Shown: piece by piece, positions 16,356 through 64,000 of the stretch | Layout of the letters: each line of letters begins with the position of its first letter | How positions within the stretch are numbered: the first letter of the stretch is position 1 | The notes under the pieces: model-generated | Seen by the model: the letters and a program-made list of their open reading frames with translations, nothing else | Database searches by the model: none | Told to the model about the DNA's origin: nothing | NCBI GenBank assembly: GCA_965644295.1 | Contig: CBFFRP010000352.1 | Location: 363,310 to 427,309 of the forward strand | Length of the DNA stretch: 64,000 nt | Origin: Paraphysomonas bandaiensis | Taxonomy: Eukaryota; Protista; Chrysophyceae | Direction: 5' to 3' | Program-made: the position numbers and the translations under genes

Positions 16356-16833
16356 TTGTATTTCCATATATTATTCTTCTGATGTGTAAAATACTTTTTC
16401 ACCATCTATGTCCGTGTACTTATTAAAGAGTACATTTGCTTGTACGGAAACATATATTCTCGGGAGGGACTTAACAAGGGGGCTGCATATATAGTTTGTA
16501 GAGGATATTTCGTGTACAATGTTTTATAGATTATACATGATGTGCATACTGCACAGTAAAGAATATCTTCGTTGGAGAGCAGGTTTCAATATATTGAAAG
16601 CTCGTGGATAAATTAAAACTCGTTTATGACGTTTAAGGTATTCTTCTCCGTTACCAATCAGATCACACATCATACACATACATGATATTGACTATTGATC
16701 ATTTTGACAATTAAGATCGTTGAGAAAAGTTTATAGTAATTAAACTGGATAGACTCTATTATTATAATTGTATACACAATTGTATGACATGTCAACAACG
16801 TGATAATTTATTTTGTTCATATCAACCACTGTT

Positions 16834-17662
16834 CAATTTTGCACACTGACGCATGAAACAGACATCTACCAAAATCTGTTACAAATTCAAGCTGACTCCA
16901 ATGTCTTCCCTCCATTGTGTGCACTCATCCAGCACATGCATCCACCTTGCACTCTTCTCCCGAGTGACTTACACTAGTAGGAAACCGTGCACCTTCCCCG
17001 CTCGGATGAAAACCTACTAAGCAAGAATAACATAAAAGCACCACAAATGTACCTGACACTGCTTGGAGAACAGTGCCAGAGCCTTGATATAATCTCAATG
17101 ACCTGGGTCAGGAGAAACCAAGACTAGGCAGTAGACGTGTGAGAAGACATGACAGGTCTAATCACATCATTGCCATTGCCATGCATCCATGAGGAAAGTT
17201 TGACGCATTACCTCGGTCATTGGCCGGTCACACAGATACCGAATAATGTGAACTCATACTCAGCATCAATCACTCAAAGCAAACGCAGGGAGCAAGCAGA
17301 ATGTTGATATACCTGACATCTGCTGACTTCAGGTGTTTTGAGTTCTTAAGGTGAACATCCCGGATGCTTAACTTCAGCAGGCAGCCCAATACCCCGGTTA
17401 CCCTTCTGGTGGGCCCTGTCCCGGATGCCCTTGAGGTGGGCCCATTCCCGGATGCCTGTTTATTCGTCAGGGCCCAAAGACGTCTACACAAGTGACACTT
17501 ATTAGTGTCCCTTGTACCACACAAGCATTTGGCTATGAGTGGGCAGAACAATATATCTGCTGACTATATAATATGCGGCTCACGTTAGTTTCCCGGAGAA
17601 ATATCTCCGGTACTTATCCCCCAGAACACCACGAAAAGGTGCGAGTCCGACTTTGTTGAGGG
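16834..17662 (-). mobile_element. Ribozyme-headed retroposon, long form, 3' end deleted
   Basis: Nearly identical to 50508-51328. Intact 5' end CCCTCAACAAAG at 17662. Confidence 0.85.
17576..17662 (-). ncRNA. Putative HDV-like ribozyme (L1Tc/ingi Pr77-like)
   Basis: P1 CCCUCAAC/GUUCUGGG, P2 CGG(A)CUCGC/GUGAGCCG, P3 ACC-UUUUCGU-GGU, perfect P4 CCGGAGA-UAUU-UCUCCGG and J4/2 GAAACUAAC. Confidence 0.65.
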
Positions 17663-20499: not shown

Positions 20500-20880
20500 T
20501 ACATACATACATACATACATACATACATACATACATACATACATACATACATACATACATACATACATACATACATACATACATACATACATACATACAT
20601 ACATACATACATACATACATACATACATACATACATACATACATACATACATACATACATACATACATACATACATACATACATACATACATACATACAT
20701 ACATACATACATACATACATACATACATACATACATACATACATACATACATACATACATACATACATACATACATACATACATACATACATACATACAT
20801 ACATACATACATACATACATACATACATACATACATACATACATACATACATACATACATACATACATACATACATACAT
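20500..20880. repeat. Perfect (ACAT)n microsatellite, about 95 units
   Basis: Uninterrupted tetranucleotide repeat at 20501-20880. Confidence 0.99.
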
Positions 20881-25260: not shown

Positions 25261-25353
25261 GATTCCTTCAGGATTTATATAACAGAACCACCATTTACAA
25301 AGCATGCTGTGGTTAAGGGTTAGAGCGCAGTTTCTTTGCATCTAGCTGCAGGA

Positions 25354-28300
25354 ATGGTCAGGTGTGCTGTCGGACTGTTAGTAACATGTGTGGCAGTGCT
25401 CACGACGGCTGTCAGCTCCACTTTGAAGGCTCCTTATCGGAATTATAGTTACAGTGACTTTTCTAGTATATCAGTGTTGTTTAACGAGCATCAATCGTCG
25501 TTTGGTGGAATTGTTGATGCGTATGAGCTGTCTTACCGGTCAACGTTTGATCCACTGTGGCATATTCATAGCGATTCATTGGGGTCTGAGGGGAGAAATA
25601 GATCAGAGGCACAAATAATATCAATCAAAGTAGACGATGAAAAGAGTTTGTATGAATCGGGTGGAACGTTTACTCTGGGAATCGGTTATGCAGGCTTGAA
25701 CCCCCAGGATTTTGAGCACGCTGCTAGAACACCTCGGATACCGTGGAATGCTACCGCTTCTCAATTGCGACATGCTCTAGCGTCTCTTGTGGGAATATCT
25801 GTACGAACTGTGAAACGATGTGATGAATTTGGAAATGACGAAATCAGTCATGGAGGATTCGAGGGGTGGTTTCACTCCTGCCCGTATGGTGATCAGGGTG
25901 GATTTCGCTGGCTCGTTGTGTTTGATGCACTTGCCGGAAATCAAAACTTTCCTAAGCTGTATTCGTATCGAGAGAATCTCGGCAACACCTGGTCTGGTGG
26001 CACAGAACAGGTATCAGTAACACGAATACATGGGGGGGCTGTCAGCCCCAGTCTTTGCCGACGTGGAGTCTGCTCCAGCGTTGTGCGCAAGCTGGAACCC
26101 AGTACACCATACGTATTTCGATATCGCGCTCATCTAAATATTGATGGCTGGACTGACTACAGTGTAACTTCTGAGCCGATATTTACAGCTGTTCACCGTG
26201 TGCCATCAAAGCCCCGCACACCTCACCCACTGACATCCCAGGCAAACTCTATCTCCTTCTCCCTCGCTGCATCTTCCGCACTTCAGACTGTTCATAAATT
26301 TGAGTCACAGTTTAAAGAGAGTAATGAGGAGGTATGGAATCCGGGTCCGACACTTGAAGTAACTGACTACGAACGTGAACACTTGGATTCTTTTGTTATG
26401 ATTCTGGGCAACTTAAAGTCAGGTACCCAATATGTGCTGCGAGTTAGAGCGGTCAACGCAGTTGGCGTAGGCCCATGGAGCTCGCCATCTAACGCACTAT
26501 TTACTAAAGGATACAATGACAGCAAACCCATGGTTCACCCCCCTGTAATTGAAGATCACGATGTCACGTCAAGCAGTGTTCTAGTTACTGTTAGAGCGGA
26601 ACCTGATGCCACAGCAGATGTGTACACGAACGATTACAGAGTGCAATACAAGCCACGTAGTCGCACCAACTGGTTAACCATGCCAGATCGACTTTCGCTA
26701 ACAACTCGCCGGGTTGGGGTGGAGGTGCAGGAGATAAGTGTGCGCTCCGATAGTGAGGCTGGTTGTCAAGGAAGGTTTTATATAGAACTTCGAGGGACTT
26801 TGCCTGATCTTGTGGACAGCTCCGTAACTACTGGTATCTCGTTTGATGCCACTGAAGAAGAATTCGTTAACGCTGTGCTTTCGATACCTCGAATTAGAAA
26901 CAGTGGGGCGCGTGTATCTGCACGCCGAGTACTGAATCAGTTCAATGGCTACACTTGGATTCTTGACATTCAAGGCATGGGCAACATTGCGAAATTCCTT
27001 CACAACAGGAACGATCTAACGAATGGAGAAGATGCCACGAAACCGTGTTGGACTGGTGCAGGGTATGTAGTCAGTACGCGTTCCATCAAGGATGGCATCG
27101 ATGTACTTACTGAAGATGAAGCAAGCGTTCTGATAACAGGTTTAGAACCGCAGACCGCATATGACGTGCGTGCCCAGCGTGTGGATGCAAGGGACTCGAG
27201 TTTAACATCAAGTGATACCGTACAGATAACAACGAAGCCCGTCGTTTCCATACTCGCGAACATGTCTTCGGCATTTGCTCTGGATTTCAATAACCCCTTT
27301 TTTTCGGGCCAATATGCAGTAGGAACCAGTGGCAACAGAGCTGCTCGTCGTGAGGATTTTCATTATGCCCAAGGTAGTGCAGCAGGCGGAAAAAGTGGTG
27401 AAAAGGGTGCAGACGGTCTCTGTGTGATAGTAGGTTTCAGAAGGGACAAAGGTCAACCATATTTTACTGAGTATTTCTTTTATTCTGGAAGAGAGGAGGA
27501 GTATGTTGTACCGTACATTGAGAGTCACAAATGTCCGATAACGCGTCTAACGATCAAATGCTGGGGTGCTGGAGGAGGGGGTGGCGTTCTTTCTAACTAC
27601 GAGACTTCTGTTGACAAGGAAACAATATCCCATGGTGGCGGAGGTGCTTTTGCGCAGGCGACACTAGCAGTTCAACCCGGAGAAAGATTTCGTATCACTG
27701 TTGGAGGCGGTGGTTCGCCTCCGAATGGTGAGTATGGTGGCAACGGTGGCTTTGGCGGAGGAGGGAGAGGTGGGAATGCTCTTAAAGGAGGAGGTGGAGG
27801 AGGCGGTGGTGGAGCCTCCGTTGTGACTCTCGGTGAAGATAACACCCTCGTACTTGTTGCTGCCGGTGGAGGTGGCGGTGGAAGTACAGATTACTGCTGC
27901 TCGGGTGGAGGTGGAGGAGGGGGGGCTGGAGAGGGAGAAAGAGGTAGTGCACCAGAGGATAATACTCCTTGGCCGCTCTCTGACCCAGAGAGACCAACTC
28001 CTGTGAAGCGCCGACATGAGTACACCGCAGAGAGCTGTCCTGAAAGTAAAGATGGCATTTGGTGTACATCTCCTTGGGATATTGAAGCACGCTCGCTTCC
28101 AGCTGAGCATTTAAATTTAGAATATGGTGAATCACCGAATGCCAACTACTCGCTGTGGTCACAGGGAGGATTCGGTGGAACTTTGATTATGGGAGGATCA
28201 CATGGAGTGAGTGGTGGGTATGAGGTTGTTCAAAATGTAGATGAAATGATTGCATCAATGGACAATGGTCGTGCTACAGTGTACGGTATCGACCCGAAGT

Positions 28301-30906
28301 CTGTAGTAAATCCGCATGCTCAGCAAGGGCGCTACTTGAGTGGTGGAAGAGGCGCCGGAGGAAAGAAAGGAGGTGGCGGTGGCGGGAGCGGATATTTTGG
28401 AGGAGGTGGTGGAGGAAGTGGTATAGATGCGGCTGGAGGCGGAGGTGGCTCATCCTATGTGAACGAGGAGCTCACTGTTAATAATAATATGGCAGTTTCG
28501 AGAACAGTTGACACACCCACTCCCACGTTAACTTATCTCAGCAACTCTGAAGCAGAACTTAGCTGGTCGGGGAGCTGGACTGATGCAAAGGGTCGTTATG
28601 CCAAGGGATTTGAAATTGAGATGGCATTCGGAAATTACTCCGAAGATTTTACGTACATTGCCACCGTAAACGTACAGACCGACATCAATAACGAGGCGTC
28701 AACGAAAGTGTACTCACATGTTGTAAGCAATCTCGAATCAATGCAGATATATTCGTTCCGTATTATTCCCTTATTGCCTCATGGCCGTGGTAGCCCGTCT
28801 GGAGTTTTGAAGGTGTTGACTCTTTCTGCAGCGCAAAATTATTGGGAGCCCGTTGTTGGTCACCGTAATGCAATTGCTGCAACTGGGCGTGGACTAACCA
28901 ACCCCGTCTTATCTCGTCCTCACTTGGATGTGGGGGTCGAGATACACGGCGAGAGAACATCTGAAAATCCTCTACGCGTGACCGATGCGGCGACTGCAGA
29001 TATCCCAGTTCTTCCAAGTAGCCGTCGGGGTCATTCGCTAACTTTACTTGACGAGTTTGTGTATATGTTTGGCGGAAGAACTGATGGTATATATTATATG
29101 TGAACGAAGTTTGCTTGTTTTTATGCATCGTTTTATCAGGATATACATGCGCATATACACTGAAAGATATGCTTAACTTGGGTACGCCCGAATCCGGCTT
29201 GGATATAAATCCATGCGCTACGTTTCAAAATGAGGTACTTCTATGAAAATGTCGTTGCGTACAATTGTAAATAGATATGCGGACAGGTCAGTGAGCTGTG
29301 GCGATTTAATATATACGACTATCGATGGGTGTTTATTCCCATAGAATCGGATACTCCTTCAGCACGGGAACAACATTCAGCGGGTATGATGGATGGCAAT
29401 ATATATATATTCGGTGGCAAGAGTCGCGGATCTTTCCCGTCGACAGCAGATACGGTGTACAGTGACTTCTGGCGACTTAATGTGGAGCCACGCTATATAT
29501 TGAACGAGACCTGGAGAGCAGACGATGTATCTATCGCGTTTCGAGAAGGGCAACGAGATAAATTTCTTATTAATATCACCGACGGTCAAGACCCCTATGT
29601 AACTGGTGCATCAACTGAATCATCACGAACAGGGGCTTGTATATCAGATATTGTAGTTGTGGTATGTCTAGTCACCTAAATATTTAAACCTGTTGACGTT
29701 TTGTTCAAGGTAAAATTTGCCCATCCTTGCATTAGCCAACTGCGAATTTCACTTCAAGGACCTGGACCGTCAACAGGCTCCCCTAACTTTCATCCGCACT
29801 CGTATGAGGAGGAAGTCCTTCTGTTTGACCATACGCATAAGCAAAATAATACTGCATGTGCCAGGGGAAATTTCACATTTGTTTTTGATGAAGATGGAAT
29901 CAAAGAAACTCTTTCATGTTGTGAAACTGATGGTATTCATCATTTCAAGCCAGATGGAAGCCTCTATGAATATATCGGAGCCTCTCCGTTTGCAGAATGG
30001 ACTCTAGTTGTTGAAGACATGAATATTGATGGTCAAAGTGGTGAGTTAATTGAGTGGGGTATTGAGTACTCCCTGGAGCCTTGCAATCGCCAGTACTCCT
30101 GGACAGAAATCACAACCACAAGTGGTGATGGCCAGCCATCCGCACGGTATCAGGCAAATATGATTGTACATGAGCACTCTCTCTTCTTGTTCGGAGGACG
30201 GGGAGAAGGTGATACCATCCTCTCTGACCTGCATCGCTACGATATGGCAACCAACTCATGGACCGTACTAAAACCACGCAACTTTGATATTGCCTTTGCG
30301 GCAGCTTCCATGGTTGGTATGAGCTTGTCCCTAACAAAATGGGGCTTGATTCGATTTGGTGGATATATCCGACTACCGTCACTTGCTGGGTACGGTAGCG
30401 GTTACGTCAACGATGTATATATTATGGACCCGGTTACTTTGCATTGGCGACTGGTTGAAGTGGAGAACGATGAAAATTCATTGCTTCCAGCGGGAAGGTA
30501 CCTCAGCTCCGCTGTCTTCATCCCTTCCAGCAGCATGCGTTGGAGAACGGAATTTTCTTATCGCATTATGTTTGATCAGAGAATCAAATCTACCCACGCT
30601 AATTTTGCTGGGGCACTCATGGATGGACTACTGATATTCGGTGGCCACAATGGCGCTACTGGAAGTTTAGAAGATGGGTCCACTGGTGGGATGTTGAATG
30701 ATATGTGGCAGTTGCGCTTTGCGAACTGGAGTTTATCGAATAGCCGAGAATCACAGAATACGTATGTAGATTTTAACTGCAAATGGAGGACGTCCGGGAC
30801 TTCGGCATTAGTAAACCTCTGCTTATCCGGGAGTAATTCGGAATGTGAATTAAGGGATTTGATTATGCTTTCGTGGTGTGCAGGCTCCAATCAAACCATA
30901 GCTTGA
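25354..30906 (+). CDS. Large secreted multidomain protein: FN3 repeats, glycine-rich (ALK/LTK-type) domain, Kelch repeats and a P-domain-like insert
   Basis: Signal peptide. FN3 motifs (LEPSTPYVFRYRA, LKSGTQYVLRVRAVNAVGVGPWS). KCWGAGGGGG..GGGAF..ITVGGGG..LVAAGGGGG..GGGGSSY. Kelch motifs (RRGHS..YMFGG, REQHS..YIFGG, FLFGG). Introns ~29087-29140, ~29234-29286 and ~29662-29709. Confidence 0.85.
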
Positions 30907-32479
30907 TGCCGAAGTCAGTGTATGGGTTAATACTACGTAGTTGGAATATCAGTTGTATTGGAATACGATTTCTTTGTTTATCACCTTTCATAAAAGTAGT
31001 TGTAGCTATCTATCTGTATTTGTAGTAATATAATGCTTTATGAGTTATTTTATGAAAATATCTTTCCACAAGTATGAACGTGAATACTGGGTTGGTATAA
31101 AAACACCTTAGTACGTAGGGATGTATTTTCACAGACACACTCTTGCATAACATTATTTACACTCTACAGCTAGCTACTGTATGTATCAATTTATAATTCT
31201 ATTGAAGTCAGTTCTAGGATAGAAGACATGCCAATATTACGACGGCAGTTTCCATTCTCCATACAATATCACGACAGGCCTACCACAATATCATTGTCGT
31301 CATCAATATACTAATTTAAATACAGCACATAACAATAAAGAGTTCGCCACACGACTAAACTTAAAAGCTTTTAGAATACCTTTCTAGAAGTCACTGTTCA
31401 GATTAGAATCACTGCCACCATACTCCTTATCACTCAAGATCACGTTCATTCAGAACCACGTGATTTACACTTGCATCAAACTTTGTCAATAAATTTAAAG
31501 ATCAAAACTATGATGCTGGCTACATACACTAAAGCATAATAAGGAATCTTTCTTTAGCAATCATTAATATTTATCATAGGTACTTCATTGTGGAGGAGGC
31601 GAGAGTGAAGCTAGCAGCAGAAATAAAGAAAAAATATTTCGTTGTATAACTGTTACTGTCACCCTTGTAAAGACTGTATTCGTATTGAATATTAGAAATA
31701 TGTATTTTTTAAATATTAAATACTGACGTAGTGACTAACCAAATTAACTAACAGAAAAGACTGTGTACAATATAGCATTATATTGTCATTACTAGAAATA
31801 GTTTTGTAATATTGGTCTCATTACAATAGTATCCACAACATCAATATATTCTCAATAACAATATGTTAATTTAAATCTGGTTGAAGCTAAAGTTTCTTTT
31901 TTTCCCTGCCTCTTCATAGATATTATATTTTATCACCCCAAATCTGTGTTAAGACACTCCACAATATTCTCGTCATTTTCCCCGAGAGAATATTGCACGC
32001 CATTGTGGATAACGATTTTTGAATCAATATCAGAAATCATTGCTCCGTCATACAAACACTACGTCTAGATTTTTTAAAAGCAATATCAATTTATCTGTAA
32101 TATTATTATTAACCCACGTAAAATGATACTAATATAATTTGATGGTGGGTATTTGGTTAGACGCCGTGCCATCAAGGTTTTTGAATTGCACACATCCAGG
32201 ATCCAGAGGACCATATTAATAACATTGCGTGCTCAAAATAAAATATCTAGCGCGCAGAGAGCTCAGTCACATGCCTTCATTATGAGGTTGATGATAGTAT
32301 TCCAGAGAGACTAATTTTGTGATACATGAGTGTATAACGGAAGAGAATTATTCCTCCCTTAAATGCAGCAGGCCTCCGTTATATCTACTAAAAGTGATTG
32401 AGTTTGTGGTCACTCGTTACGAAACAAGTAAAAAACACAAAGTATTATTTTTCGTGAAGCAAGATAACAAGCGCTACTG

Positions 32480-32567
32480 CCCTCAACAAAGTCGGACTCG
32501 AACCTTTTCGTGGTGTTCTGGGGGATAAGTACCGGAGAGATTCTCTCTGGGAAACTAATGTGAGCCG
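32480..32567 (+). ncRNA. Putative HDV-like ribozyme (L1Tc/ingi Pr77-like)
   Basis: Same fold as the other copies, starting exactly at the TSD-defined first base. One C>A change at the P2/P3 junction. Confidence 0.6.
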
Positions 32568-32964
32568 CAAACATAGTCAGCAGATATTCTTCTGCCCACT
32601 CATAGCCGAATGCTTGTGTGGTACAAGGGCACCAATAAGTGTCACTTGTGTAGATGTCTTTGGGCCCTGACGAAAAAACAGGCATCCGGGAATGGGCCCA
32701 CTTGAAGGGTAAGTAACCGGGGTATTGGACTGCCTGCTGAAGCCAAGCATCCGGGATGTTCACTCTAAGAACTCAGAGCGGAAGTGGTCGCACCTTGGTG
32801 CCTGCGGCGACGCACAAGCAGCTTCCGTTGCGTTAAATAGTAGGATAAGAAAAGTGTGTACTGATTAGTTACAGTTAGAGGTCTAACTAGTTTGTCTAGC
32901 ATTCATCTAGCTACTAAGTTGGCACAGGCTTTTAACGCCTATTTCTAATAATAAGACTTCCAAT
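32480..32964 (+). mobile_element. Ribozyme-headed retroposon, complete short form (485 bp)
   Basis: Perfect 13-bp TSD ACAAGCGCTACTG at 32467-32479 and 32965-32977. Family 5' end CCCTCAACAAAG and 3' end AATAATAAGACTTCCAAT. Confidence 0.92.
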
Positions 32965-33457
32965 ACAAGCGCTACTGGAGTGACTCCTTCAGAGCCTTAC
33001 CCTTGTGTTACTACTATGTTATTCGTGCTAACACGAACAGGACAGAGGATAGCTTTGCTCAAGGTATTGCACATTGGATATAGCTAGATGAAACTCTCCA
33101 CACTGCAGTGTATGTCCCATATGTCCCTTTGAAGCCAGTCCCACACCAGCACTGCAGTCGAGATTGATATCTACCGAATTCTCCAAAAAAAGTCTACTTT
33201 TCCCCAAAATCCTGCTATTTTAACATTTCCTTTTTGACAGGTTTTCTTGTTTCGGGACTTCACCAGCCTTGAAAAATTCCGTATTTTCAGCCCCATCGTA
33301 TTTCTTCATATGAAATCTCCGTAGACCGTTGAGTCGAATCTCCTCCATTTAATCCTGCTGTGTCCACATGTGCACGCACAGATAGTTCGTGGACGATATC
33401 TGAGCTGATAATTGTAACCATAGTATAGAGACATCCCTGTGAACCCCCATAAGCAGC

Positions 33458-49380: not shown

Positions 49381-50123
49381 ACAAAGATACTATTCAGCTA
49401 TAATAACTGTGAAACTGAAGTATCGTATCATGACGATTCAAAATACGGAAGTTGAGCAGTGGTTGATATGAACGAATAAATTATCATGTTGTTGACATGT
49501 TTTACATGATAACACACACAATTGTGTATGCAATGATTATAATAAAAGTCTATCCAGTTTTATTACTTATCGATCTCAATATCGTGTAGATATTTGTTTC
49601 GCATGGTGAATTCGGTAATGAGATTTAGATGACTGAAATATATATTGCATTTGTACCCAAAATTTTTGAAGGAATGTTTTAAGATTGGTTTATATAAGAA
49701 TTGGTACGTGCTTAGTTGAGAGAGAGATAAAATGAAAAAACTACGCAATCTATGCACCTTTTCTTTACTGTCTTTGTGTACTTTCTTTCTTACTCATATT
49801 GCTGTAGTTTTATATTTTGGTATATATATAGTTATATTGTTGGTGAGTAATGTCCATAAACTACTTGTGCGTATACGTAGATAAGTTGGTTATTCGAGCC
49901 ATGATTACATATTTAAGTTTAATTTAGTGCATCAGCTTCTGCTTACGTTTGATTACAATATCAAACCTACTTATGTTTAGTGTATCAACTGTTGCTGATA
50001 ATCTTACACTGGGGACTATTGTATCGGCAAACCTGTTTACTTGAAAGTTCTTGTTTACGATTCTTCATTTACAGTGTTTAGATTCAAGATATCAGTACCC
50101 ATCAACACCACCAAATTGAGTAT

Positions 50124-51328
50124 TGAAAATCTGATTATTAAGAAGCGCAAGCTTGTGCGTTGCCGCGACCAACCTAACAACTCGCGCGACACTATGCATA
50201 ACATGACTCTCATCTAGTTACTATTGCATGCACCGACAAGTGCTCAACTATACAACACGATTTAGTTAGCTACATGGGCATACGACGAGTTGCGTGTTTA
50301 AGCCGGATCATACGCTCCTGCCCAATCTACTTGTCCTAACACAAACAACTTGCGGTCGGTGTCTTCGGCATATGTCTCCTGTATATGCGGCAGATCTTTA
50401 GGGCCCTTTTCAAGGTGGTGTTCACAGCAGCAGGTAGTCTGGAAGGGAGAATAAAGTAGCTCTATAGCGCCGGGTCCTCCCACGGTCACGAAGCGGTCTC
50501 ACTGGTGCAATTTTGCACACTGACGCATGAAACAGACATCTACCAAAATCTGTTACAAATTCAAGCTGACTCCAATGTCTTCCCTCCATTGTGTGCACTC
50601 GTCCAGCACATGCATCCACCTTGCACTCTTCTCCCGAGTGACTTACACTAGTAGGAAACCGTGCACCTTCCCCGCTCGGATGAAAACCTACTAAGCAAGA
50701 ATAACATAAAAGCACCACAAATGTACCTGACACTGCTTGGAGAACAGTGCCAGAGCCTTGATATAATCTCAATGACCTGGGTCAGGAGAAACCAAGACTA
50801 GGCAGTAGACGTGTGAGAAGACATGACAGGTCTAATCACATCATTGCCATTGCCATGCATCCATGAGGAAAGTTTGACGCATTACCTCGGTCATTGGCCA
50901 CACAGATACCGAATAATGTGAACTCATACTCAACATCAATCACTCAAAGCAAACGCAGGGAGCAAGCAGAATGTTGATATACCTGACATCTGCTGACTTC
51001 AGGTGTTTTGAGTTCTTAAGGTGAACATCCCGGATGCTTAACTTCAGCAGGCAGCCCAATACCCCGGTTACCCTTCTGGTGGGCCCTGTCCCGGATGCCC
51101 TTGAGGTGGGCCCATTCCCGGATGCCTGTTTATTCGTCAGGGCCCAAAGACATCTACACAAGTGACACTTATTAGTGTCCCTTGTACCACACAAGCATTT
51201 GGCTATGAGTGGGCAGAACAATATCTGCTGACTATGTTTGCGGCTCACGTTAGTTTCCCAGAGAGAATCTCTCCGGTACTTATCCCCCAGAACACCACGA
51301 AAAGGTGCGAGTCCGACTTTGTTGAGGG
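50124..51328 (-). mobile_element. Ribozyme-headed retroposon, complete long form (~1.2 kb)
   Basis: Perfect 13-bp TSD CCAAATTGAGTAT at 50111-50123 and 51329-51341. 5' end CCCTCAACAAAG, 3' end AATAATCAGATTTTCA(ATA). No RT ORF. Confidence 0.92.
51241..51328 (-). ncRNA. Putative HDV-like ribozyme (L1Tc/ingi Pr77-like)
   Basis: CCCUCAAC AAAGU CGGACUCGC ACC UUUUCGU GGU GUUCUGGG GGAUA AGUA CCGGAGAG AUU CUCUCUGG GAAACUAAC GUGAGCCG gives the order P1-P2-P3-L3-P3'-P1'-P4-J4/2-P2'. Confidence 0.68.
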
Positions 51329-51505
51329 CCAAATTGAGTATCACACATATACAGAGTATGTTAATCATGATTTGTTTAGGGCTTGCTCTTGTTTCCTGTT
51401 AAGCATTGATGGATATGTCGTCTGGTCGAAATGGAAATGCATACACTGCACAAGCAACGGCATCAGAATCCTATGATGCTATTCATACATATTATTATTA
51501 CATCA

Positions 51506-55913: not shown

Positions 55914-56445
55914 CCCTCAATAAAGTCGGACTCGCACCGGATACGTACCGCAGCTATTCCTTCGGAGAACTAACGTGAGCCGCATATAGAGTCAGCAGAT
56001 GACGTTCTACCCACTCATAGCCAAATTCCTGTGTGCTACAAGGGAAACTAATGCACTAATGTATGTGTCACTTGTGTAGACGCTTTGGGCCCTGACGAAT
56101 AAACAGTGAACAGACATCCGGTGGGCCCACCTCAAGGGCATCCGGGGTATTAGACTGCGTGCTGAAATTAAGCACCGGGCTGTTCACCTTAATCCGGGAT
56201 CGGGGTATTGGGCTGCCAGCTCAATTCAATCATTCCGGCTGTTAACTTTAAGATCTCAGTAGATGTCAGGTATGTGTCAATATTCTGCTTGCTCACTGCG
56301 TTTGCTTTGAGTGATAGAACGAAAGTGGTTGCACCTTTGTGCATGCGGTGACGCACAAGCGGCCTTCGTAGGGTTAAAGATTAAAGAGTAGGATATCAGA
56401 GTTAAGCACTGCCTCTTAAACGCCTATTGCAAATAATAAGACATT
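55914..56445 (+). mobile_element. Diverged short-form retroposon with a damaged ribozyme head and an internal duplication
   Basis: Starts CCCTCAATAAAGTCGGACTCGCACC, lacks L3/P1', keeps AACTAACGTGAGCCG and ends AATAATAAGACATT. ~50-bp duplicated unit at 56140-56250. Confidence 0.8.
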
Positions 56446-62968: not shown

Positions 62969-63419
62969 GTGAAAGCTTTATTATAAGCAATAGTCATTGA
63001 AGAGTCAGAAGTAATTTAGCACTGCAATTGAGCTAACTCGTACTTAACTCTAGTATCCTACTATTTAGCGCTACGAAAGCTCCAAGGTGCAACCACTTTC
63101 ACTCTATCACTCAAAACAAGCGCACACTATACCTGACATCTGCTGCCTTAGGATTCTTGAGTCCTTAAGTGAACAGCCGGGATGCTTAACTTCAGCAAGC
63201 AGCCCAATCCGGTGCCTGTGAATTCGTCAGGGCCCGAAGACGTCTACATATGTGGCACTTACATTAGTGTCCCTTGTACCACACAAGCATTCGGCTATGA
63301 GTGGGCAGAACAATATCTGCTGACTATATATGCGGCTAATGTTAGTTTCCCGGAGAAATATTGTCGGTGCTTATCCCCCAGAACACCATAAAAAGGTGTG
63401 AGTTTGACTTTATTGAGGG
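62969..63419 (-). mobile_element. Diverged near-complete short-form retroposon
   Basis: 5' end CCCTCAATAAAG at 63419 with a mutated ribozyme head. Family body and a degenerate 3' end near 62970. Confidence 0.8.
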
Positions 63420-63452: not shown

Positions 63453-63544
63453 TGACTGACAGTGGTATATGTAGCTCACATTAGCTATCCGAAGAAATAT
63501 CTCCCAGAACACTACGAAAAGGTACAAGTCCGACGTTGTTGAGG
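63453..63544 (-). mobile_element. Isolated degenerate 5' head (ribozyme region) of the retroposon
   Basis: Minus strand CCTCAACAACGTCGGACTTGTACCTTTTCGTAGTGTTCTGGGAG, directly upstream of the 63419 copy. Confidence 0.7.
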
Positions 63545-64000
63545 ATATCTTGCTTTAGGAATTTGTCTAACAACGAATATCTTAACACATTCATTTCACG
63601 ACACATCTAAGTAGTGGTCGGCAGTAAACAATTCTTTCATTAACTGTCTCGATTCTCGATTAAGACCCTGGCTGTCGTAGGAGTTACTTTGGATTGTCAG
63701 GAGGAGAGTATACATCAGGATACTACACTATAGAAGTACGATAGAGTATACCGTCAATATTTATGGTGGCTTAGTGTAGTGCCAGCGTTTGTGAGTGTAG
63801 TCTATTGTCTATGATACTATATGGACAAATAGTAGAAGCGTAGTAGCAACCATCTAGCATAGGTCATTAATCATTGGTATAACAAATTACTTCTGCCACA
63901 AGCAAGCAATAACACTGTCCTTTATTTTCAACTGTACATCGATATTACGTTATAACATCACTGCCAGAATAAAACTATTTTGAGATAAACTTTTCTGTTG

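Follow-up and report, generated by a model that had tools for sequence, protein, structure and literature searches.

On the minus strand of a 64,000-nt stretch of the Paraphysomonas bandaiensis genome (contig CBFFRP010000352.1; hereafter the window), a non-coding retroposon of 1207 nt (50122–51328) opens with 88 nt (51241–51328) that, judged against published sequences and by fold computation, very probably constitute a hepatitis delta virus (HDV)-like ribozyme motif of the L1Tc (Pr77) type. Insect (R2, RTE) and trypanosomatid (L1Tc/ingi) retrotransposons are already known to carry HDV-like ribozymes at their 5′ ends, and by its sequence the present one is a slightly odd version of that known retrotransposon-head ribozyme in a new host, with cutting predicted. 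The best overall explanation, which we regard as probable, is that the 88 nt are the L1Tc/Pr77-type, HDV-like, self-cleaving head of retroposons that depend on a long interspersed nuclear element (LINE). A first-pass annotation of the window had proposed such a ribozyme. Its reading is right in kind, while its drawing of helices P1 and P1.1, its expectation of covariation among the copies and its analogy with RIME/ingi elements need correcting.

The element is defined precisely by its flanks. It starts with CCCTCAAC and ends with ...AATAATCAGATTTTCAAT (in longer terminal reads, CCCTCAACAAAGTCGG and ...TTAATAATCAGATTTTCAAT), and it is enclosed by an 11-bp target-site duplication, ACTCAATTTGG, which lies upstream at 51329–51339 and again downstream at 50111–50121, both on the minus strand; element nt n therefore corresponds to window position 51329-n. 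Poly(A), terminal inverted repeats and a long open reading frame (ORF) were all looked for in the 1207 nt, and none was found. Seven further genomic copies are 99.3–99.7% identical to it, have the same first and last bases, begin with CCCTC in all cases and are bordered by differing duplications of 10–14 bp. Every full copy examined has the same first C, placed beside unrelated flanks and variable target-site duplications. The duplications, the fixed ends and the lack of inverted repeats are hallmarks of insertion by target-primed reverse transcription. The dispersed retroposon of the first-pass annotation is thus a target-site-duplication-flanked element of the kind without long terminal repeats (non-LTR), and its first base is, as had been claimed, set by the duplication, on the strength of the ACTCAATTTGG pair and the seven other copies.

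Read on the minus strand from 51328 to 51241, the head runs CCCUCAAC AAAGU CGGACUCGC ACC UUUUCGU GGU GUUCUGGG GG AUAAGUA in its first part and CCGGAGAG AUU CUCUCUGG GAAACUAAC GUGAGCCG in its second, exactly as first written down. The 5′ strand of P1 is nt 1–6 (CCCUCA; 51323–51328), and cleavage is predicted 5′ of nt 1 (51328). The 5′ strand of P2, nt 14–22 (CGGACUCGC, with A17 bulged; 51307–51315), pairs with nt 81–88 (GUGAGCCG; 51241–51248) to give a pseudoknot of 8 bp and −7.3 kcal/mol around P3 and P4. P3 (ACC/GGU) and its loop L3 occupy nt 23–35 (51294–51306), the 3-bp helix being closed by the 7-nt loop UUUUCGU with U at the first and G at the sixth, next to last, position; the motif CGUG, known as the DPE in Pr77, lies within this segment at +30 to +33. 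The P4 hairpin, nt 53–71 (CCGGAGAG AUU CUCUCUGG; 51258–51276), has 8 bp and −12 kcal/mol. The joining strand J4/2, nt 72–80 (GAAACUAAC; 51249–51257), reads GAAAC76UAAC and so contains the C-N-R-A motif, with nt 76 (window 51253) as the candidate catalytic C. Its counterparts in active ribozymes of trypanosomatids and in the environmental class described below are GAAGCUAA and GAAGCCAA, which it matches. The bulged P2, the P3 with its 7-nt loop, P4 and the CUAA of J4/2 had all been pointed out in the first-pass annotation and are confirmed, with P2 at 8 bp. As in HDV and CPEB3, the whole is a nested double pseudoknot in the order P1-P2-P3-L3-P3′-P1′-P1.1-P4-J4/2-P2′, and the L3 and J4/2 features just given are also shared with these ribozymes; the L3 of CPEB3 is UUCACGU. 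Unlike HDV and CPEB3, the head has at +1 a C paired to G rather than a G·U wobble, a spacer between P3 and P1, and no Rfam match.

The closest resemblance is to the trypanosomatid Pr77 signature, or L1TcRz, of L1Tc, NARTc, ingi, RIME and SIDER elements, with which the head was compared by eye from the sequences printed in PMC3185411, PMC4748587 and PMC4035085. L1Tc has CCCTGGCTCAGCCGG at positions 1–15, CCACC at 16–20 and CGTG at 25–28, and its positions 27–77 are TGGTGCCAGGGTCTAGTACTCTTTGCTAGAGAGGAAGCTAAGCGCCTGCTG (PMC4748587; PMC3185411 primers). Two further members that cleave in vitro are Leishmania SIDER2A, CCCUGAU..CACC UCAUCGU GGU AUCAGGG UCCAGUAC (P4) GAAGCCAAG.., and Trypanosoma vivax SIDER1, CCUUGAU..GCC UCAUCGU GGC AUCAAGG UCUAGUAC (P4) GAAGCUAA.. 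(PMC4035085). Written in the same manner, the head is CCCUCAAC..CACC UUUUCGU GGU GUUCUGGGGG AUAAGUAC (P4) GAAACUAAC. The signature order CCCT, CCACC, CGTG, AGTAC, GAAGCTAAG recurs in it as CCCT, GCACC, CGTG, AGTAC, GAAACTAAC. All junction motifs of LmSIDER2A, TvSIDER1 and L1Tc thus recur in the head without a change of order; its helices have other sequences but still pair. The shared traits are a position at nt 1 of a non-LTR element with a CCC start, CACC-N4-CGUGGU forming P3 and L3, AGUAC before P4, GAARCUAA after P4, a P1.1 of a single pair, the CGUG promoter motif, and the heading of non-autonomous elements as well. The likeness to Pr77 (CCCU, CACC-N7-GGUG, AGUAC and a hairpin), which had been proposed in the first-pass annotation, therefore holds against the printed L1Tc, SIDER2A and SIDER1 sequences. 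The head differs from Pr77 in its host, which is a stramenopile and not a kinetoplastid; in L3, UUUUCGU here versus UCAUCGU; in the place of CGUG, at +30 to +33 versus +25 to +28; and in P1, whose strands CCCUCA/UGGGGG leave a gap of 4 nt after P3, whereas a canonical drawing of the helix contains mismatches.

Relatives of the head also exist in the environment. Metagenome contigs of the Joint Genome Institute were scanned with a junction pattern (CACCT-NN-TCGTGG, 7–15 nt, a non-A base followed by AGTAC, 10–40 nt, GAARCYAA), in which the non-A position shuts out the canonical head itself. Twenty-two loci (L058–L079) with 13 distinct sequences were obtained from soil and other metagenomes. A perfect 7-bp P1 directly after GGU is present in 10 of the 13 sequences, when shuffled P1 3′ strands give 18%, and a P2 of 6–9 bp in 12. 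In all 13 the third nucleotide of L3 is Watson-Crick complementary to the nucleotide that directly follows P1, and since four types of pair (A-U, C-G, G-C, U-A) occur there, P1.1 is supported by covariation; P1 and P2 covary across the 13 sequences as well. On one contig the motif lies about 1 kb upstream of an ORF with apurinic/apyrimidinic endonuclease (APE) and reverse transcriptase (RT) domains, an arrangement seen twice (L065, L071), and another contig (L073) bears a HET domain and looks fungal. The head shares with this environmental class the junction motifs, a P1.1 formed from nt 3 of L3, and a J1/4 of 3–4 nt followed by AGUAC. The environmental set indicates that the L1Tc-type ribozyme is a widespread class whose core the head contains, and that the Pr77 signature is not confined to trypanosomatids. 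A near-identical pattern of about 20 specified bases, without the leading CACCT-NN and ending in GGAARCYAA, gave 10 matches in the 62.5-Mb genome, all of them mutated heads, and 0 in the reversed control; no second family or unrelated site was found in the genome by this pattern.

The environmental class also bears on how P1 is to be drawn. The first-pass annotation had paired C1 with G43 around a 2×2 mismatch. The U·U and C·C mismatches do occur in that register, but the register itself is disfavoured, as the ensemble of the first 52 nt gives C1-G43 a pair probability of 0.001 versus 0.94 for C1-G45. From the pairing computation we infer instead a P1 of 6 bp (C1-G45, C2-G44, C3-G43, U4·G42, C5-G41, A6-U40), whose 3′ strand would be nt 40–45 (UGGGGG; 51284–51289). 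The first nucleotide of this helix is the duplication-defined first base, and its 6 bp fall within the 6–7 bp known for P1 in HDV-like ribozymes (PMC4908430). The class rule, a J1/4 of 3–4 nt ahead of AGUAC whose first nucleotide is paired to nt 3 of L3, translates here into AUA plus AGUAC and a P1.1 between A46 (window 51283) and U28 (window 51301). The GG P1.1 proposed earlier is disfavoured by the same rule, and the earlier P1 drawing is probably wrong on the grounds of the class rules and the pair probability. Under either register the P1 region is the atypical part of the motif.

Variation among the genomic copies is informative for P4. Its form is CCGGAGAG/CUCUCUGG in the heads at 51328 and 32480 and CCGGAGA UAUU UCUCCGG in subfamily B, represented by the head at 17662, so that the observation that P4 varies among copies and stays paired is sustained for both subfamilies. 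Covariation over the copies had been expected for the whole fold. Among 20 distinct heads, it is found in P4, which alone has a paired alternative, and not in P1, P2 or P3, which vary by private mutations only.

Several results weigh against the head being a working ribozyme of this class. Searches with HDV-type descriptors and Rfam models were divided: a loose descriptor (P1 of 6–8 bp, spacer of at most 4 nt) matches exactly at the duplication-defined first base, whereas the strict canonical descriptor does not match the head and the HDV-type models of Rfam give no match, either at the gathering score or with E values as high as 10. The Rfam models of this type are narrow, and covariance models cannot encode a pseudoknot. 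The nested minimum-free-energy fold of the head scores z = 0 against shuffles, a value that is not informative about a pseudoknot, and a competing hairpin between nt 15–22 and 31–39 is predicted. At the junction of P3 and P1, four nucleotides intervene in the favoured register (G36–C39, GUUC; 51290–51293), and the spacer-free register costs the two central mismatches of P1. Such a spacer is absent from the trypanosomatid members compared and from all 13 environmental sequences, where P1 follows GGU directly. The genomic copies are too alike to provide covariation for P1, P2 and P3. Some well-folding Pr77 signatures of trypanosomatids are inactive in vitro (PMC4035085). In addition, among the Logan contigs of four RNA runs, which do not resolve starts, ends or strand, two RNA contigs run past the 5′ boundary of the element into other flanks. 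On the favourable side, the element turns up in the contigs of two of these runs, poly(A)/cDNA metatranscriptomes.

The loose descriptor has a background of about 90 unrelated matches in 595,000 positions, the head and a second site in the element excluded, a figure that is generous in that the descriptor was framed after the head had been seen. The second site lies at element nt ~640–770 (window 50560–50693, minus strand; TAGTAGG...CCTACTA) and is matched by the strict descriptor in 28 copies. It was rejected as spurious, its P3 containing two G·U pairs and its P2 four, and it is a warning about the specificity of HDV-type descriptors. These background matches, the spurious site, the z of 0 and the missing Rfam match speak for an accidental fold, drawn on a conserved 5′ untranslated module that has another function, for instance LINE protein binding or RNA stability, and for a coincidental likeness to Pr77. 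We consider such an accident quite improbable. The junction pattern matches no unrelated site across 62.5 Mb and nothing in the reversed control, nearly all the metagenome sequences display the full covarying double pseudoknot, and the motif starts at the duplication-defined first base, which is the position of the ribozyme in R2, RTE and L1Tc elements.

The head is not restricted to one element. With up to 3 mismatches allowed, a 22-nt motif of the head has 1,393 matches in the 62.5-Mb genome and 0 in the reversed control, so the genome holds at least 1,393 heads. The first 229 nt find 2,435 candidate sites versus 182 for the tail of the long form, which identifies the head as a module common to several families. 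The head tops several families of LINE-dependent, non-coding elements resembling short interspersed nuclear elements (SINEs), whose lengths include 484 nt and 1207 nt, and the retroposon family is very abundant and recently active. Two independent full-length elements sit inside older heads at nearly the same spot, after nt 40–42 (L018:~520-1771, L030:~1010-1771), and the target-site duplications of these nested insertions cover head nt 28–42 and nt 30–40; the head may contain an insertion hot spot.

The partner LINE is recognized by its tail. Over its last 190 nt the short form shares 86% identity with the 3′ untranslated region of a LINE at G000:C352:172968-180237, and the final ~25 nt (CT-AATAAT-MAGA-YWTYCAMT) are common to the LINE and both short families. 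In this LINE (loci L050:3969-7001, L055 and L051:1-837), a single ORF of ~2,340 aa encodes a SET domain of the histone methyltransferase type ahead of its AP-type endonuclease and reverse transcriptase; a domain search of this ORF gave no RNase H match. More than 30 of its copies have one exact 5′ end, CTATCCTG, in which neither similarity to the head nor an HDV-like fold was found on comparison, and the head is also absent from the sampled copies of two other LINE families. Two other LINE families, at L056 (G000:C566:1-4900) and L057 (G000:C426:349500-354000), have frames of >1,380 and >1,630 aa upstream of the endonuclease, their N-terminal regions being unusually long. As the tail-sharing LINE lacks the head, the short elements are composed of head, body and LINE tail and are SINE-like rather than deletion derivatives of the LINE. 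The RIME/ingi analogy fails on this point. The partner is also unlike LINEs of the ingi clade, which are APE-RT-RNase H elements, in being SET-APE-RT with no RNase H detected and in having no motif. For R2 of insects, PMC3414825 and PMC3774820 describe a 5′ HDV-like ribozyme that frees the element RNA from its co-transcript, and R2-derived, non-autonomous SIDEs that keep the ribozyme and the LINE 3′ end. Compared with what is described there, the present elements are alike in having the motif at the 5′ end and in being non-autonomous with a LINE 3′ end. They differ in that R2 is site-specific in 28S ribosomal DNA and SIDEs arise from R2 by internal deletion, whereas the insertions here are dispersed and the LINE is without a ribozyme.

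Most SINEs owe a fixed 5′ end to an internal promoter for RNA polymerase III (Pol III), and an ordinary head of that kind, related to tRNA, 5S, 7SL or snRNA, would also be common to several families with different bodies. For the present head this origin is very improbable: it has no Rfam or ARAGORN match and no readable A or B box, and the TTTT at nt 26–29, together with several T4 runs in the 1207-nt form, would terminate Pol III.

With a self-cleaving head, the cycle of the element would proceed as follows. We infer transcription by RNA polymerase II (Pol II), started either at an internal promoter like that of Pr77 or upstream of the element with read-through into it. As it emerges, the RNA would fold into the nested double pseudoknot, holding P1 from C1-G45 to A6-U40, P2 between nt 14–22 and 81–88, P3 (ACC/GGU) with L3 UUUUCGU, P1.1 of A46-U28, and P4 at nt 53–71. 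With C76 of J4/2 as the catalytic base, it would cut itself 5′ of C1, and the freed RNA would carry the exact first base of the element. Such cleavage at C1 is predicted and somewhat favoured. The 3′ tail (...AATAATMAGAYWTYCAAT) would be recognized by the reverse transcriptase of the SET-APE-RT LINE, and target-primed reverse transcription would then give full-length copies with 10–14-bp duplications.

The same exact start could arise by initiation at C1 instead of cleavage, if the head were a ribozyme relic, or an inactive ribozyme, whose present role is that of an internal Pol II promoter like Pr77. The 77 nt of the L1Tc signature act as a Pol II promoter, for which the CGTG at +25 to +28 after CCACC is essential (PMC4748587); the corresponding stretch of the head is GCACC-TTTT-CGTG, in which CGTG falls at +30 to +33. 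The departure of its P1 region from the class and the well-folding but inactive trypanosomatid signatures mentioned above point in the same direction. However, CGUG belongs to the ribozyme core (L3 and P3) in every member of the class, and its presence is therefore no independent evidence for a promoter. The active master copies have preserved P1.1, P2, P4 and J4/2 intact, although a function as promoter alone would not call for it, and in L1Tc the promoter and ribozyme functions coexist rather than exclude each other. A head that has become solely a promoter, the main rival reading, is unlikely, though far less so than a chance fold or a Pol III head.

To our knowledge, the Pr77 signature has so far been treated as a hallmark of trypanosomatids; here it stands at the start of ~1,400 short, recently active retroposons of a stramenopile. 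If the self-cleaving reading of the head holds, these elements show how a SINE can do without a Pol III promoter: its exact start would be restored by the trimming of any read-through transcript. The range of L1Tc-type ribozymes would be widened, and a natural variant of the P3-P1 spacer would be available for probing how strict that junction is. For genome annotation, the head would account for the fixed 5′ end of the most abundant repeat family. A broader interpretation, which we offer only tentatively, is that a SINE-like class uses an L1Tc-type ribozyme head in place of a Pol III promoter and acquired it independently of the mobilising LINE, and that the version described here functions despite an insertion at the P3-P1 junction not known from any characterised HDV-like ribozyme; with the environmental relatives added, the Pr77 ribozyme would then be ancient or be moving between lineages, across eukaryotic supergroups.

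The assignment of the host is based on its proteins. The ATP synthase alpha subunit is identical to a transcript in MMETSP and 81–83% identical to those of Phaeomonas, Chrysophaeum and Ectocarpus, and an acyl-CoA synthetase is 60% identical to that of Ectocarpus versus 49–51% to those of diatoms. The sequencing runs that contain the locus are marine. By these sequence comparisons the host is a marine stramenopile, in agreement with the claim that it is not a kinetoplastid.

The window contains six heads, with first bases at 51328 (minus), 17662 (minus), 32480 (plus), 55914 (plus), 63419 (minus) and 63545 (minus). The second long-form copy, at 16827–17662 on the minus strand, has the subfamily B P4 and is 97.9% identical to the first copy over 836 nt and divergent beyond. 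The short form of 484 nt, with the same head, lies at 32480–32963 on the plus strand between flanks of ACAAGCGCTACTG at 32467–32479 and 32964–32976. An old copy at 55914–56440 on the plus strand, its 3′ end approximate, has an 18-nt deletion that takes out L3 and the 3′ strands of P3 and P1. Two decayed copies are on the minus strand: an old one at 63128–63419, in which P2 is broken by G-to-A changes, and a head fragment at 63460–63545.

The genes of the window are almost without introns. A homologue search with a 753-aa ORF found none. A perfect (TACA)95 microsatellite of 381 bp (20500–20880) is flanked by a diacylglycerol kinase gene on one side and a 401-aa ORF without annotation on the other. 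An ORF of 1,255 aa on the plus strand (25336–29103) joins a fibronectin type III domain to an ALK/LTK-type glycine-rich domain, a pair better known from animals.

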